A DNA stretch of 64,000 nucleotides from Prasinococcaceae sp. CCMP 1430 (Eukaryota > Plantae > Prasinodermophyta). The position numbers and the translations under genes were made by a program. Every line of letters begins with the position of its first letter. Position 1 is the first letter of the stretch. Below the pieces are notes generated by a model, which was not told the origin of the DNA, made no database searches, and was given only the letters and a program-made list of their open reading frames with translations. Below are positions 33,018 to 39,048 of this stretch, piece by piece. The stretch is from the NCBI GenBank assembly GCA_013416795.1, contig RQSC01000019.1, positions 126,701 through 190,700 of the forward strand, read 5' to 3'.

Positions 33018-33283
33018 GCCGCCGAGCGCGCGCTCGTAAAAGCGATGCGACGCCTATCGCGCTGGCGCCGGCGCGCCCGCGCGCGGCGCCGGCCCCGGCG
33101 CTCGCCCGCGCGCCCGCGCGCGGCGCCGGCCCCGGCGCGGACGCGCCCATTCGCGCGCGGGAAGGGCACGCAATGACACAACGTAGTATACAGCATCGCG
33201 CGCGTCGCGCGCAGCCTTCGAATTTGCTAGGCGATGGCTCAGAGGAGCGGTCGACCGTCGCGGCCCGCAGGATCGACGCTGCG

Positions 33284-33912
33284 CTATGGCCTTCGCTCCG
33301 ACACGTTCTGGACGACCCCCGAGACGAGCGCCTCCCCCGGGAGCCAGTCTGCGCCGAAGTCGTCGGCGTTGGCGTGCAAGCACACGCACCGCCCGATGAC
33401 GCTCTCTCGACCGCGCAGGGTGACGAGGGGGTCGTACACCGCGGACGCGTACTCGTTGGCGCCGCCCTGGACGTTGCCGAGGTCGCCGACGTGGCGCCCC
33501 CACTCGAGCTTGCCGCCCCTGCCGCGGGTGACCGCATCGGGCGCGCCGTGCGCGCTCCGCCGCGGGTTGAAGCTCGGCGTGCTCGGCGAGCGACCCTCGT
33601 GCAGCTGCAGCGCGTGCTCGCCCGCCGGCAAGGACCCCGACTCGAGCGACACCTCCACTCGCACGGCGACCGCGCCGTCGGCCGCCTCGAACTCGCGAAA
33701 CGACACCACGCCGACGGGAGTCGAGCCCGAGCCCTCCCCGCCGGCGCGCAGCAGCGCGGCGGCGGCATTGCCGTTCGGGACGTACTCGACGTCCACCAGC
33801 TGCACCCCTACGCTGCCGTCCGCCCGCGCCGTCATCACCGTGCGCGTGAGCACATCCGCGCCGGGGGTGGCCGCGCTCGCCGGCGGCGCAACGGCGAGGG
33901 GCCCCGGCGCCG
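33284..33912 (-). CDS. Cu/Zn-SOD-fold protein, degenerate (copy A); N-terminus in the gap
   Basis: GEHALQLHE, FNP, AHGAP, RHVGDLGNV, SVIGRCVCLHANADD. The N-side LAVAPPASA-ATP resembles the end of a thylakoid signal peptide. Confidence 0.8.
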
Positions 33913-34526
33913 NNNNNNNNNNNNNNNNNNNNNNNNNNNNNNNNNNNNNNNNNNNNNNNNNNNNNNNNNNNNNNNNNNNNNNNNNNNNNNNNNNNNNNNN
34001 NNNNNNNNNNNNNNNNNNNNNNNNNNNNNNNNNNNNNNNNNNNNNNNNNNNNNNNNNNNNNNNNNNNNNNNNNNNNNNNNNNNNNNNNNNNNNNNNNNNN
34101 NNNNNNNNNNNNNNNNNNNNNNNNNNNNNNNNNNNNNNNNNNNNNNNNNNNNNNNNNNNNNNNNNNNNNNNNNNNNNNNNNNNNNNNNNNNNNNNNNNNN
34201 NNNNNNNNNNNNNNNNNNNNNNNNNNNNNNNNNNNNNNNNNNNNNNNNNNNNNNNNNNNNNNNNNNNNNNNNNNNNNNNNNNNNNNNNNNNNNNNNNNNN
34301 NNNNNNNNNNNNNNNNNNNNNNNNNNNNNNNNNNNNNNNNNNNNNNNNNNNNNNNNNNNNNNNNNNNNNNNNNNNNNNNNNNNNNNNNNNNNNNNNNNNN
34401 NNNNNNNNNNNNNNNNNNNNNNNNNNNNNNNNNNNNNNNNNNNNNNNNNNNNNNNNNNNNNNNNNNNNNNNNNNNNNNNNNNNNNNNNNNNNNNNNNNNN
34501 NNNNNNNNNNNNNNNNNNNNNNNNNN
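33913..34526. other. Assembly gap (N run)
   Basis: 614 N; hides the 5' ends of SOD-like A and RseP. Confidence 0.99.
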
Positions 34527-34629
34527 GCGCAGGGCGCCGCGCGCGCGCCGCCGCCGCGCGCTGCGCACGCCCAACGCCGCCCTCGCCTGACTCCCGCACT
34601 CACGCACGCGCTGGCTCACTCGCTCGCAG

Positions 34630-35553
34630 GTGGAGTACGGCCTGCGCGCGTTTCCCATCGGTGGCTACGTGGCGTTCCCGGACGACGAGCCCGAGTGCCC
34701 GTATCCGGAGGACGACCCGGACCTGCTGCGCAACCGCCCGGCCAAGGACCGCGCGCTCGTCATCAGCGCGGGCGTCATCGCCAACGTGGTGTTCGCGATG
34801 TCGACGCTGCTCACGCAGGTGAGCACGGTGGGGCTGGCGGAGCAGATCGACCAGCCTGGCGTGCTAGTGCCGGGCGTCGCCGCCAAGTCGGTGGCCGCCG
34901 AGGCGGGCATCAAGGAGGGTGACGTCATCCTCGAGCTGGACGGGGTGTCGCTGCCGGGTGGGCAGAAGTCGGTCCGCCGCGTGGTGGAGACCATCAAGGA
35001 CAGCGACGGCACGGGGAGCGTGCGGATGACGCTTTCGCGCGATGGCAGCACGTTTCCCCTCGAGGTGATTCCGGCGGTGGCGCCCGACGGGAGCGGTCGC
35101 GTGGGCGTGACGCTGGGCCCCAATGCTCTCATCAAGCGGACCAAGGCGGAAAACCCCGCGGAGGCGGTCTTCCTCGCGGCGAAGGAGTTCGGCAGGCTCA
35201 CCAAGGGCGTGACCGACGGGCTGGGGCAAATCTTCTTCCACTTCGGCGAGAACAAGGACGCCGTGAGCGGCCCCGTGGCCATCGTTGCCGTGGGCGCGGA
35301 CATTGCAAAGAAGGAGCTCTCCGGGCTCTACGAGTTCGCTGCGGCGGTCAACATCAACCTCGCGGTCGTGAACATGCTGCCGCTGCCGGCGCTCGACGGC
35401 GGTTACCTGGCGCTCATCGCGCTCGAGGCCGTGCGCGGCGGGGACAAGCTGCCCAAGGAGCTCGAGCAGGGCATAATGAACTCGGGCTTCCTGCTGCTGC
35501 TGACGGCCGGCATGTTCCTCATCGTGAAGGACACCATCGGCCTCGTCTCGTAG
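34630..35553 (+). CDS. rseP: RseP/ARASP-type M50 intramembrane zinc metalloprotease with PDZ domain (3' exon)
   Basis: YGLRAFPIGGYVAFP, RALVISAGVIAN, PDZ (AAEAGIKEGDVILELDG), SGPVAIV, NLAVVNMLPLPALDGG. The HExxH exon is presumably in the gap. Confidence 0.92.
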   Translation: MEYGLRAFPIGGYVAFPDDEPECPYPEDDPDLLRNRPAKDRALVISAGVIANVVFAMSTLLTQVSTVGLAEQIDQPGVLVPGVAAKSVAAEAGIKEGDVILELDGVSLPGGQKSVRRVVETIKDSDGTGSVRMTLSRDGSTFPLEVIPAVAPDGSGRVGVTLGPNALIKRTKAENPAEAVFLAAKEFGRLTKGVTDGLGQIFFHFGENKDAVSGPVAIVAVGADIAKKELSGLYEFAAAVNINLAVVNMLPLPALDGGYLALIALEAVRGGDKLPKELEQGIMNSGFLLLLTAGMFLIVKDTIGLVS

Positions 35554-35699
35554 GCACGCCGGGCGGGCGCGCGATTTTTTGTTTCCTGCCTACTGCCATT
35601 TCAAGAGCTGCGCCCCGCCCCGACGGGCGCGGCCGCGCCGCGGCAGCCGCCGGCGCATCTCGAGTGTAATTTGTACGCGTTTTACTACGACGAACTCGC

Positions 35700-36240
35700 T
35701 CAGTACCCGTACGGCAGCTGCGCCTGTGCGGCGTCGTACAGGAGAGGCAGCTGCACCTCCTCGCCCTTCATCGAGGAGATGGCGTTGAGCACGAACGCGA
35801 CCAAGCACACCGCGAAGAGCGCATTGAAGAGGTAGCCCCACGCGGTCGCAGCTGCCGCAGTCTTCGGCGGAAAGAGAGACGCGGCCATCTTCGGCACCAC
35901 CAGGAGCAGGTCGACGAGGATGGCGTTGAGCGCATTGAAGCGCACGAAGCGCGACAGCCGGTTGTTGTTGACGACGCCGAGGTAGAGCGCGAAGAACAAA
36001 ATCATGTTCGCGTACGGCACCGAGGCCATGAACTGGAGAAAGGGCATGAGGAGGGGCACGAGGAATGGGAGCTGAACGAGGAGCTTGGCGCCGTACGGCG
36101 CGGCCCCGGCCACCGGGAGCAGGAAGGCCGCCGTGCCGAGCGCGCGCTCCGCGGCGGGCGCGAGCGCCGCCTCGTCGCCACCTCCGAGCCCACCGCCGCC
36201 GCCAAATCCTCCTCCGCCGCCGCCGCCATCGCCGCCGCCC
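35700..36240 (-). CDS. TIC20: Tic20-family plastid inner envelope protein; start not resolved
   Basis: ERALGTAAFLLP, LFFALYLGVVNNNRLSRFVRFNALNAILVDLLL, EVQLPLLYDAA. Gly-rich linker upstream; an in-frame TAA lies just beyond 36240. Confidence 0.82.
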
Positions 36241-36677
36241 CGCAGTTCAGGTTAGGGCTGACCCCCATCGGATAGCGACGCATTTGAGGTATAACCACAG
36301 AATTCAACATAGGGTCTACAATGTCACCGTTTTCAATTCGATTTGACCTTGGTCACCAAAGTCGAACCGACGCGAGGTCAAAACGCATGCGCTCGACGCG
36401 CGCGGCCCTCGCACGGCCCCGCCGGTCCGCGGCGCGATCCCGTCCCCCCCCTCTCTGCAACCGTCGATGCGCAGACGATTATATTTCCGCGTAAATAATC
36501 TGTAATACGCATAATAATATCAATATTACATAGATGTGGTAATTTGTGTGGGTATTCTGCGTTTTCCAGCATGCGCGCGAGTGCGCGCGAGCGCGCGCGC
36601 GCGCGCGCGCCACTGGCAGTGCGCGCCGCAGAGAGACCTCTCAGCCCCCCCGCCCCCCCGCTTTTGTGCCGGGGGCC

Positions 36678-38045
36678 ATGTCGTCGAGCGAGGGCGCGTC
36701 GGCGTCGCCCGCCGCGGACGGCTCGCTGTGCGGGTACGCGGGCGTCGAGGCCATCCTGGAGAAGTTCGTGCCGCCCGCCGAGCGCGCGGAGGTCGTGCGC
36801 GTGCTCTACGGCGCCAACCAGGGCAAGGCCGTGCAGGCCATGGAGCTTGACGAGCAGGTGAAGGCCGCCGCCAAGGCGGGCGACTTCGACGTCCTCGCGT
36901 ACAAGTTTAACGCCGCGCCCGAGCAGAAGCGCGCGCCGCGCGTGACGCGCATCGCGATGATCCAGAATGCATGCACGCACCCGACGACGGCGCCGTACCT
37001 CGAGCAGCAGCGCGGCATCATGAGGCGCGTGGCGGAGATGCTGGACGCGGCGGGCGCCGCCGGAGTCAACGTCGTCTGCCTGCAGGAGGCGTGGAACATG
37101 GTGCGGGCGAGCGCGCGCACACGCCGCGCGCGCCAGCGAAGGCGACCCCGCCCGGCGCGGTGCGCCCGCGAGCGTCCGCCCTGCGCGCGCGCGGCGTGGT
37201 CGGGGCGCCGCTGACGCAGAGACTCGCCACCGCCCCCGCTCGGCGAGCAGCCCTTCGCGTTCTGCACGCGCGAGCGTGCGTGGGCCGAGATGGCGGAGAG
37301 CGCCGAGGACGGACCCGCGGTCACGCTCTGCCAGGAATACGCCCGCAAGTACAACATGGTCGTCGTGTGCCCCATCCTTGAGCGCGACAGCGCGCACGGC
37401 GACACGCTGTGGAACACCGCGACGGTCATCGGCAACAACGGCAACGTGATTGGCAAGCACCGCAAGAACCACATCCCGCGCGTGGGAGACTTCAACGAGA
37501 GCACGTACTACATGGAGGGGAACACGGGTCACCCTGTCTTTGAGACCGTGTACGGCAAGATCGGCATCAACATCTGCTACGGGCGTCACCACCCGCTCAA
37601 CTGGATGGCCTTCGGCCTGAACGGCGCGGAGATCGTGTTCAACCCGAGCGCGACGGTCGGCTCGCTGTCCGAGCCCATGTGGCCCATCGAGGGACGCAAC
37701 GCCGCCATTGCCAACACGTACTTCGTGGGGTCCATCAACCGCGTCGGCACCGAGAGCTTCCCCAACGAGTTCACCTCGGGGGACGGCAAGCCCGCGCACA
37801 AGGACTTCGGCCCCTTCTACGGTAGCTCGTACATGGCCGCGCCGGACTCCAGCCGCTGCCCGGGCCTCGCGCGCCACCGCGACGGCGTGCTCATCACCGA
37901 CTGCGACCTCAACCTCGTCCAGCAGGTGAAGGACACGTGGTGCCTGCGCATGACCGCGCGCTACGAGATGTACGCCGAGCTGCTCAACAAGTACATCCGG
38001 CACGACTTCGAGCCCCAGGTGATCAAGGACCCGTCACTCAAGTGA
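36678..38045 (+). CDS. UPB1: Beta-ureidopropionase (nitrilase family), 2 exons
   Basis: CLQEAWNM|PFAFCTRE joined across intron 37101-37250; [23 protein letters not shown]; [12 protein letters not shown]; [12 protein letters not shown]. Confidence 0.96.
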
Positions 38046-38242
38046 AAGGCCACGGCGGGCGCGCCACCCAGCGCGCTGGATGCGCGAAGCCTCGTCCCGC
38101 CTCTCGCACGGTGCGGCGCGAGCGCGAGACTGAGTAAACTTTATTCTTATTTGATACGCGCCAGCTGATGGCTGCGGCGCCATTCATGCCCGGCCGCGCC
38201 CTGTCGCGGCACGGGCGGCGCGCGCGGTGGCGCGGACGCCCC

Positions 38243-38834
38243 CTACTTGCTGGTCCACACGATCTCCCCGGCCGCGATGGGCGGGCCGCTTCCGCCGAGG
38301 GGCTGCGTGGTGGTATCGTCCTCGTCGCGGTACACGACCACCGTGTGCCCGACGACCGCGCTCTCGGTGTCCTTCTTCCCGAGGCCGCCGTACGTGTTTT
38401 TCGCATCCAGCATCATGAGCGGGTCGCGGTACGATGCGCTTGCCGTGCCGTCCGCCCCCGCCTCCGCATTGCCCATATCGCCGATGTGCCTGAAGAGCAC
38501 GAGCCCCTTGCCCATCTTGGCGGACGTGGTCCCAAATCGCGTCACCCTGAACGGGTCGCCGTGCGGGAGGCCCTCAGGATTGTAGGGTGGCGTGTCGGCG
38601 CCCGGTCCCTCGGCGATGTTCAGCCCGTGCTTGCCCGGCGTGAGGCCAGCGAGGGCGACGTCCACCTGCAACGCCACGCGCCCGAACTCGGACTTGACCT
38701 CTGTGAAAGTGACGGTCCCGCGCGGCCCGCCGTCGGAGCCATCGAGTGGCGCCACCTCGGCGACCGCCGCGCGGCCTGTCGGCTCGAAGACGACCTCCGC
38801 TGCGCGCGCGGCGCGCGGCGCGGCCGCGGGCAGC
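38243..38834 (-). CDS. Cu/Zn-SOD-fold protein, degenerate (copy B); N-terminus in the gap
   Basis: GLTPGKHGLNIAE, YNP, PHGDP, RHIGDMGNAEAGADGTA, VVGHTVVVYRDEDD, QPLGGSGPPIAAGEI. Upstream in frame is LPAAAPRAARA-AEVVFEPT (A-x-A cleavage-like). Confidence 0.82.
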
Positions 38835-39048
38835 NNNNNNNNNNNNNNNNNNNNNNNNNNNNNNNNNNNNNNNNNNNNNNNNNNNNNNNNNNNNNNNNNN
38901 NNNNNNNNNNNNNNNNNNNNNNNNNNNNNNNNNNNNNNNNNNNNNNNNNNNNNNNNNNNNNNNNNNNNNNNNNNNNNNNNNNNNNNNNNNNNNNNNNNNN
39001 NNNNNNNNNNNNNNNNNNNNNNNNNNNNNNNNNNNNNNNNNNNNNNNN
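38835..39048. other. Assembly gap (N run)
   Basis: 214 N; hides the 5' ends of SOD-like B and DPH1. Confidence 0.99.

Follow-up and report, generated by a model that had tools for sequence, protein, structure and literature searches.

Two Cu/Zn superoxide dismutase-fold paralogues of a prasinodermophyte alga, predicted to be noncatalytic and delivered to the thylakoid lumen

Canonical copper/zinc superoxide dismutases (Cu/Zn-SODs; Pfam entry Sod_Cu, PF00080), such as the bacterial periplasmic SodC and the plant stromal CSD2, are the closest described relatives of two genes, here termed A and B, that we analyzed in a 64,000-nucleotide (nt) stretch of contig RQSC01000019.1 from the green alga Prasinococcaceae sp. 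CCMP 1430 (assembly GCA_013416795.1; referred to below as Prasinoderma coloniale). This whole stretch is called the window, and all positions are counted from its first letter. The fold and the family are the same, and the best matches in the Protein Data Bank (PDB) are Cu/Zn-SODs. A and B share with the canonical enzymes H71, H80, D83 and D124 (human SOD1 numbering, used throughout) and the RHxGDxGN motif, and with bacterial SodC a predicted export-type signal, the thylakoid lumen being topologically equivalent to the periplasm. Compared with the canonical enzymes, H46, H63, R143 and the C57-C146 disulfide are missing from both proteins, as are H48 and H120 from B, their electrostatic loop is shortened, an insertion of 13 to 20 amino acids (aa) lies in the zinc loop, and their presequence appears to be bipartite, unlike a simple signal peptide or a simple transit peptide.

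Noncatalytic members of the SOD fold have precedents. Domain II of the copper chaperone CCS is SOD-like, no longer catalyzes dismutation and keeps the zinc site in some species, the human protein among them; A and B differ from CCS in that neither an ATX1-like MxCxxC motif nor a C-terminal CxC was found in any orthologue or family member examined. YojM of Bacillus subtilis, named as a precedent in a first-pass annotation of the window, serves well as one: as cited in PMC10432803, it is an exported SOD-like paralogue that lacks two copper ligands and has no dismutase activity. On that account A and B have in common with YojM a SOD fold with a disrupted copper site, whereas YojM is a bacterial lipoprotein from outside the clade described below, without the KKFGASA.H insertion and in another compartment and lineage. 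A functional precedent comes from Chlamydomonas APX2 (APX-R), which is related to APX, bears a twin-arginine motif directing it to the lumen, has lost its classical activity, binds copper and influences the metalation of plastocyanin (PMC10669542). A former antioxidant-enzyme fold can thus take on a chaperone or buffer role in the lumen. An antioxidant-enzyme fold turned lumenal would be the shared element; the fold of APX2, a haem peroxidase, is unrelated, and the SOD-like family is known from sequence.

Two Sod_Cu genes that have lost catalytic residues

Both genes match Sod_Cu above the gathering cut-off of 28.9 bits, with an E value of 2.1e-15 (57.7 bits) for A and of 8e-18 (65.6 bits) for B. 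AlphaFold2 (AF2) predicted a SOD barrel of the eight-stranded Greek-key kind for each, with a mean confidence score (pLDDT) of 88.1 for A and 92.1 for B, and Foldseek matched the model of B to CuZnSOD structures at a target-normalised TM score of ∼0.8. The two proteins are 36% identical over 164 residues. Neither SOD domain is interrupted by an assembly gap, and each of two gaps removes the 5′ end of one gene. The features of the two genes, placed by Pfam and by PDB and family alignments, are as follows.

Gene A
33284-33912, minus strand: visible coding sequence, 209 codons including the stop; 5′ end lost in gap 1
33872-33910, minus strand: end of the presumed thylakoid-transfer signal, rich in Ala and Pro and terminating in A-S-A (PPASA/ATPG, the slash following the A-x-A)
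33767-33871, minus strand: 35-aa N-terminal extension of the mature protein, before SOD strand 1
33347-33712, minus strand: Sod_Cu domain
33596-33616, minus strand: Q46 and H48
33563-33580, minus strand: S63
33539-33553, minus strand: H71
33497-33535, minus strand: 13-aa insertion between H71 and H80, before RHxGD
33473-33496, minus strand: H80 and D83
33359-33382, minus strand: C-V-C-L-H120 and D124
33311-33340, minus strand: A143 and S146
33913-34526, unstranded: assembly gap 1, in which gene A loses its 5′ end and a divergent M50 protease gene its 5′ exons

Gene B
38243-38834, minus strand: visible coding sequence (PRCOL_00005582 in EukProt), 197 codons including the stop; 5′ end lost in gap 2
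38801-38833, minus strand: tail of the presumed transfer signal, ending in A-R-A before AEVV (AARA/AEVV)
38246-38722, minus strand: Sod_Cu domain
38609-38629, minus strand: N46 and A48
38576-38593, minus strand: P63
38552-38566, minus strand: H71
38492-38551, minus strand: 20-aa insertion between H71 and H80, before RHxGD
38468-38491, minus strand: H80 and D83
38360-38404, minus strand: second insertion, 15 aa, before strand 7
38315-38338, minus strand: Y120 and D124
38261-38290, minus strand: P143 and A146
38835-39048, unstranded: assembly gap 2, in which gene B loses its 5′ end and a divergent plus-strand gene (beginning after 39049) its start

Alignment with PDB, canonical and family sequences gave the substitutions H46Q, H63S, R143A and C146S in A, which retains H48, H71, H80, D83, H120 and D124, and H46N, H48A, H63P, H120Y, R143P and C146A in B, which retains H71, H80, D83 and D124; C57 is absent from both. 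Two of the four copper ligands (positions 46, 48, 63 and 120, occupied by Q, H, S and H) are therefore retained in A and none in B (N, A, P and Y), and each protein keeps three of the four zinc ligands (H71, H80 and D83), the bridging H63 being gone. The first-pass annotation had described from the letters alone two SOD-fold genes on the same strand, with the zinc-site residues kept, H63, R143 and the disulfide cysteines lost, insertions placed before RHxGD and preceding segments ending in A-x-A; the domain matches, models and alignments agree with it on all of these points.

The only cysteines of the visible A protein are the two of C-V-C-L-H120, which lie on the strand bearing the former copper ligand and, on the alignment, place thiols beside the former copper site; the visible B protein has none. 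Two extra beta strands are predicted in the 35-aa extension of A (pLDDT of 74 to 86), and the extension is kept in the sister-species orthologue L003 with 78% identity. The publicly annotated protein of gene A (P0044/P0014, 183 aa) takes the internal Met of MTARADG as its first residue.

With the copper site, the bridging His, the Arg that guides the substrate and the disulfide all lost, A and B cannot, judging from these residues, be canonical superoxide dismutases: canonical dismutation is excluded for B and very unlikely for A. This argument is built on the lost copper ligands and R143 and not on the loss of the disulfide alone, as an active cysteine-less CuZnSOD is known from Paenibacillus lautus (PMC10432803) and a missing disulfide is therefore no proof of inactivity by itself. 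The earlier statement that all of the lost residues are required for dismutase activity consequently stands for H63 and R143, whereas the disulfide is not strictly required. The H71/H80/D83 triad and D124, both retained, point to a predicted metal (zinc) site that would stabilize the fold, as in other SOD-like pseudoenzymes.

Genes A and B are real, transcribed and under purifying selection. RNA contigs are colinear with 33174-33904 over gene A (run X1) and with 38181-38804 over gene B, ending at 33904 and 38804, respectively; run X1 represents RNA, since a 150-nt GT..AG intron of a neighboring gene is spliced out in it. Marine metatranscriptome contigs also match both genes. Gene B and its sister-species orthologue L002 (72% identity) gave a nonsynonymous substitution rate (dN) of 0.20, a synonymous rate (dS) of 0.92 and a dN/dS of 0.22 over 173 codons, and the N-terminal part of gene A compared with L003 gave a dN/dS of 0.19 over 67 codons. 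L003 was used in part, as it diverges from gene A downstream of codon 118 (intron or chimera).

A green-algal Sod_Cu subfamily and its presequences

We searched 1.84 billion representatives with a profile built from A, B and two relatives and obtained 5258 Sod_Cu proteins. Among the best matches, about 20 clusters (50% identity) carry the insertion KKFGASA[C/S]H[F/Y]VG[E/D]G just before RHxGDLGN, and a word-index search with the family profile added further members. Named members come, besides Prasinoderma, from Pyramimonas parkeae, Mantoniella beaufortii, Mantoniella antarctica (two copies), Chlorokybus atmophyticus and Micromonas pusilla CCMP1545 (XP_003061742.1, labeled "uncharacterized protein, partial"). 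The family also includes marine-metagenome clusters of 61 to 177 sequences, on contigs of up to 1 Mb, and contigs from Mamiellales chromosomes, both of which demonstrate its abundance. An Atlas search by shape matched one chlorophyte-dominated Sod_Cu cluster; an Atlas search by features returned generic bacterial SOD clusters only. The family profile scored highest with very long proteins that have 6 to 10 tandem Sod_Cu domains and no family insertion (P0049 and P0050) and look like an unrelated multi-SOD-domain architecture; one of them is from a chytrid fungus (Blyttiomyces sp., KAJ3329101.1).

Residues were counted in 30 nonredundant members, each less than 80% identical to the others. The zinc-site residues are almost invariant (H71 and D83 in 30/30, H80 in 29/30), D124 is kept in 27/30 and H48 in 27/30. 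Position 46 is Asn in 27 of the 30 members, position 63 is Ser in 26, position 120 is Arg in 16 and His in 11, position 143 is Ile or Val in 27 and position 146 is Tyr or Phe in 23. The His of the insertion is invariant in this 30-member alignment, yet neither Prasinoderma protein has it: gene B encodes a recognizable but degenerate form of the motif (RFGTTSAKMGKG) with the His replaced by Lys, and the insertion of A is shorter and has neither the motif nor the His. The Mamiellales members contain a Cys...Cys pair within the insertion. R143 and the electrostatic loop are lost across the family, Chlorokybus excepted, and the Prasinoderma proteins are its most degenerate members.

In phylogenetic trees, the family forms a clade set apart from other Sod_Cu proteins (SH-aLRT support of 98 to 99), with gene B and its orthologue inside (SH-aLRT of 99). 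With fewer outgroups, A and B both fell inside the clade unaided (SH-aLRT of 98), and a tree with A constrained inside the clade was 24 log-likelihood (lnL) units above the free search, with a p value of 0.85 in the approximately unbiased test (p-AU). The long branch of gene A (2.7 to 3.1) makes its precise placement uncertain, and the grouping of A with B in the best tree has a weak support of 44. The alignments and trees place A and B in a distinct green-algal Sod_Cu subfamily, as diverged paralogues. The Chlorokybus protein branches first and retains H46, H48, H63 and R143 together with the insertion, which suggests that the ancestor of the family was probably an active enzyme. The database labels of the members are automatic ("Cu-Zn family superoxide dismutase" or "uncharacterized protein"), and our literature search found no description of a lumenal SOD-like family; such an absence is no proof of novelty, and the family is apparently undescribed, as had been supposed for the pair.

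Most of the complete members begin with an extension of ∼60 residues rich in Ser, Thr, Ala and Arg, followed by (R)R, often RR, a hydrophobic stretch and an AxA directly before the domain. We measured where the most hydrophobic 12-residue window starts: the median was residue 62 in the family (n = 29), versus residue 7 (quartiles 6 to 10) in 122 other single-domain Sod_Cu matches with ordinary signal peptides. Transcript-derived or curated models from Pyramimonas, two Mantoniella species, Micromonas and Chlorokybus have 55 to 85 such residues before the hydrophobic stretch, so metagenome gene calling does not by itself account for the pattern. An RR motif is present in L003, L006, P0016, P0058, P0062, P0063 and others; the presequence is of the twin-arginine (Tat) type in Prasinoderma, Pyramimonas, Chlorokybus and several GC-rich members, and Sec-like (QR/KR) in the Mamiellales.

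In a sister Prasinoderma species, the orthologue of A (L003) reads ...TRRGLGGALAAAAF..AAATAAA/PGTDIL, with TRRGLGG, an Ala-rich hydrophobic stretch and AAA, and exon 1 of the orthologue of B (L006) reads ...ARRALLGGGLLSAAGALCPARQAGA/AEVIW, with RR, a hydrophobic stretch and AxA. The AxA of L003 and L006 aligns with the ASA of A and the ARA of B at the gap edges. This architecture is that of thylakoid-lumen precursors and would support targeting to the lumen. L006 carries a 281-nt GT..AG intron (317-597 of L006) directly after exon 1, between ...PTG and RAA...; in P. coloniale gene B (window ∼38775), genome and transcript alike have the two exons fused precisely at this site, an intron having been cleanly lost or gained between closely related species.

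The only transcript-derived N terminus of P. coloniale gene B is P0041, an MMETSP open reading frame (ORF), which reads ...MRLGAAAAAPRAARA/AEVV. At the edge of gap 2 (38827-38833), P0041 reads LGAAAAAPRAARA where the genome has LPAAAPRAARA; either the genome letters beside the gap or the assembled transcript cannot be trusted there. Two other sequences were discarded as sources of the missing 5′ ends: L001 starts only 16 nt before the internal Met, and L005 diverges upstream and looks chimeric.

Predicted lumen delivery and competing explanations

We propose, with moderate confidence, that A and B are noncatalytic, zinc-site-retaining green-algal SOD-fold paralogues that are delivered to the lumen. 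Their precursors would most likely carry a bipartite presequence made of a chloroplast transit peptide and a thylakoid-transfer signal ending in A-x-A, the latter being of the twin-arginine type in Prasinoderma. Such a signal would deliver a prefolded, possibly zinc-loaded domain into the thylakoid lumen, where the protein would act as a noncatalytic metal-binding or structural component. Use of the twin-arginine route suits a protein that acquires its fold, and perhaps its metal, while still in the stroma. Location in the lumen, zinc binding and a nonenzymatic role are what we infer from the sequences of the two genes, their orthologues and the family.

Several points weigh against this proposal. 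In the window itself, only the AxA tails are visible, the rest of both signals lying within the gaps. P0041 has no RR, and its hydrophobic stretch is a run of Ala of ∼8 residues, unlike exon 1 of the sister species; this may reflect a weak signal in P. coloniale or a GC-rich 5′ end that was collapsed or misassembled. Because the Mamiellales have QR, KR or SR in place of RR, family members do not all share one export route. Bipartite presequences with a hydrophobic sorting stretch also occur in mitochondrial intermembrane-space proteins, and the literature search found no proteomic or imaging localization and no metal data for any family member. Finally, A retains H48 and H120 and has a C-x-C beside H120, which leaves room for other metal chemistry. 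The lumen signals suggested by the first-pass annotation hold for the sister-species orthologues and most of the complete relatives, in which RR, hydrophobic stretch and AxA are found together, and are called into question for B by P0041.

The features of P0041 and the lack of RR in the Mamiellales, together with the many family N termini that are prokaryote-style gene calls on metagenome contigs, would also suit proteins of the chloroplast, another organelle or the secretory route that are not lumenal, through a mitochondrial intermembrane-space signal, an endoplasmic reticulum (ER) signal behind a miscalled 5′ extension or, in P. coloniale, the lack of any transfer signal, which would leave the protein in the stroma. 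We regard such a location as unlikely, though with an appreciable chance of being right, because the transcript-derived or curated complete models named above all have the long extension, the RR-x-hydrophobic...AxA succession turns up repeatedly in separate lineages and in the sister-species orthologues of both A and B, and ER signals begin within the first few residues, as they do in the 122 controls. It is quite improbable, in our estimate, that A and B are still redox enzymes, with an unconventional SOD or another metal-dependent activity at a rebuilt site formed by H48, H120 and the adjacent Cys-x-Cys in A and by H48, H120 and the insertion His/Cys in the wider family. The conservation of H48 and of the insertion His, the C-V-C-L-H120 of A, the existence of an active cysteine-less enzyme (PMC10432803) and the probably active ancestor suggested by the Chlorokybus member with its H46, H48, H63 and R143 all speak for this. 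Gene B, however, has no copper ligand and no insertion His, the family outside Chlorokybus has lost R143 and the electrostatic loop, position 120 is more often Arg than His, and YojM, with its disrupted copper site, binds no copper and is inactive, as cited in PMC10432803.

Two further explanations are highly improbable and were rejected. Because domain II of CCS is SOD-like, with the zinc site kept in the human protein, and the 5′ ends of A and B are unread, copper chaperones of this kind with an ATX1-like domain hidden in the gaps could be envisaged, as the first-pass annotation had pointed out. No MxCxxC motif was found in the visible parts, in the orthologue N termini (L003, L006 and P0041) or in more than 25 complete family members, there is no C-terminal CxC tail, and only ∼50 to 110 residues precede the domain, a space occupied by the presequence. 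The loss of catalytic residues, the very high GC content and the many spurious ORFs of the region might instead suggest decaying pseudogenes or ORF-calling artefacts; against this stand the transcript contigs over both genes, a dN/dS of ∼0.2 at a dS of 0.75 to 0.92, the confidently predicted folds and the conservation of orthologues and family.

In the wider family, the insertion could make up for H63 through its invariant His and, in the Mamiellales, the Cys...Cys pair. A broader scenario, speculative and in our view rather unlikely, is that the green lineage inherited a periplasm-type, lumen-routed SOD, whose catalytic residues are still present in the streptophyte alga Chlorokybus, and converted it in chlorophytes and prasinodermophytes into a noncatalytic lumenal metal handler. 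A site rebuilt from H71/H80/D83 and the insertion His/Cys, or from C-x-C-x-H in A, might then buffer copper or zinc or supply it to lumenal proteins such as plastocyanin or carbonic anhydrase, with the two Prasinoderma paralogues cooperating.

Genomic setting and meaning of the pair

With the gaps unread, A and B have to be treated as 5′ truncated, and neither continuity nor frame can be assumed across them. ORFs read across the gaps were rejected: they are strings of X that carry no information, and another gene occupies the sequence beyond gap 1. Independent DNA contigs (X10, records 8 and 10) enter gap 1 by 20 nt from the left and by 996 nt from the right, so the true gap is at least ∼1 kb and not 614 nt. 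One X10 contig, which runs 3980 nt past 38834, probably bridges gap 2.

Between A and B lie three unrelated genes, encoding an M50/PDZ protease (plus strand), a Tic20-like protein (minus strand) and a CN-hydrolase (plus strand).

34527-35553, plus strand: M50/PDZ (RseP/EGY-like) protease gene, 5′ truncated by gap 1

The RNA contigs of the protease gene (X1/X2) match the window only from 34628, where an AG immediately precedes the match, and their 255 letters ahead of this point find no counterpart; the 5′ exons of this gene therefore also lie in gap 1, which covers the 5′ ends of two divergently transcribed genes; 34527-34627, to the right of the gap, is intron or upstream sequence of the protease gene. 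The Tic20-like gene (35700-36250, minus strand; Pfam TIC20, E = 3e-19) encodes an N-terminal Gly/Ala/Pro-rich stretch through GGC/GCC repeats (36201-36243). Between it and the divergent CN-hydrolase gene, a short AT-rich island (36440-36545) in a region of ∼68% GC is probably the shared promoter region of the two genes. Downstream of gene A, a GC-rich 37-nt tandem duplication (33066-33138) is present in two copies with a 97% match; X10 record 8 joins 33065 directly to 33103 and has one copy fewer, so that the copy number differs between assemblies or strains. A PsbP-domain gene with further exons upstream lies at 40870-41529 (minus strand).

Both public P. coloniale models are 5′ truncated by the assembly gaps and hence lack targeting signals. 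With the orthologues and relatives, the family and its signals are solid at the level of sequence, and the novelty would lie in the predicted compartment of a SOD-fold pseudoenzyme, in its family-specific insertion and in its altered metal site. In most chlorophytes, classical surveys reportedly detected no Cu/Zn-SOD activity despite the presence of Sod_Cu genes, and an inactive Sod_Cu family would explain this. The family is testable in transformable relatives, e.g., Ostreococcus and Micromonas. The proteome of the thylakoid lumen is small and closely studied, metal delivery inside the lumen is poorly understood, and, as far as we know, the SOD fold has no accepted representative among the lumen proteins. 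A family that is conserved, abundant and equipped with signals of the lumen type would bring a new participant into the metal or redox biology of this compartment.

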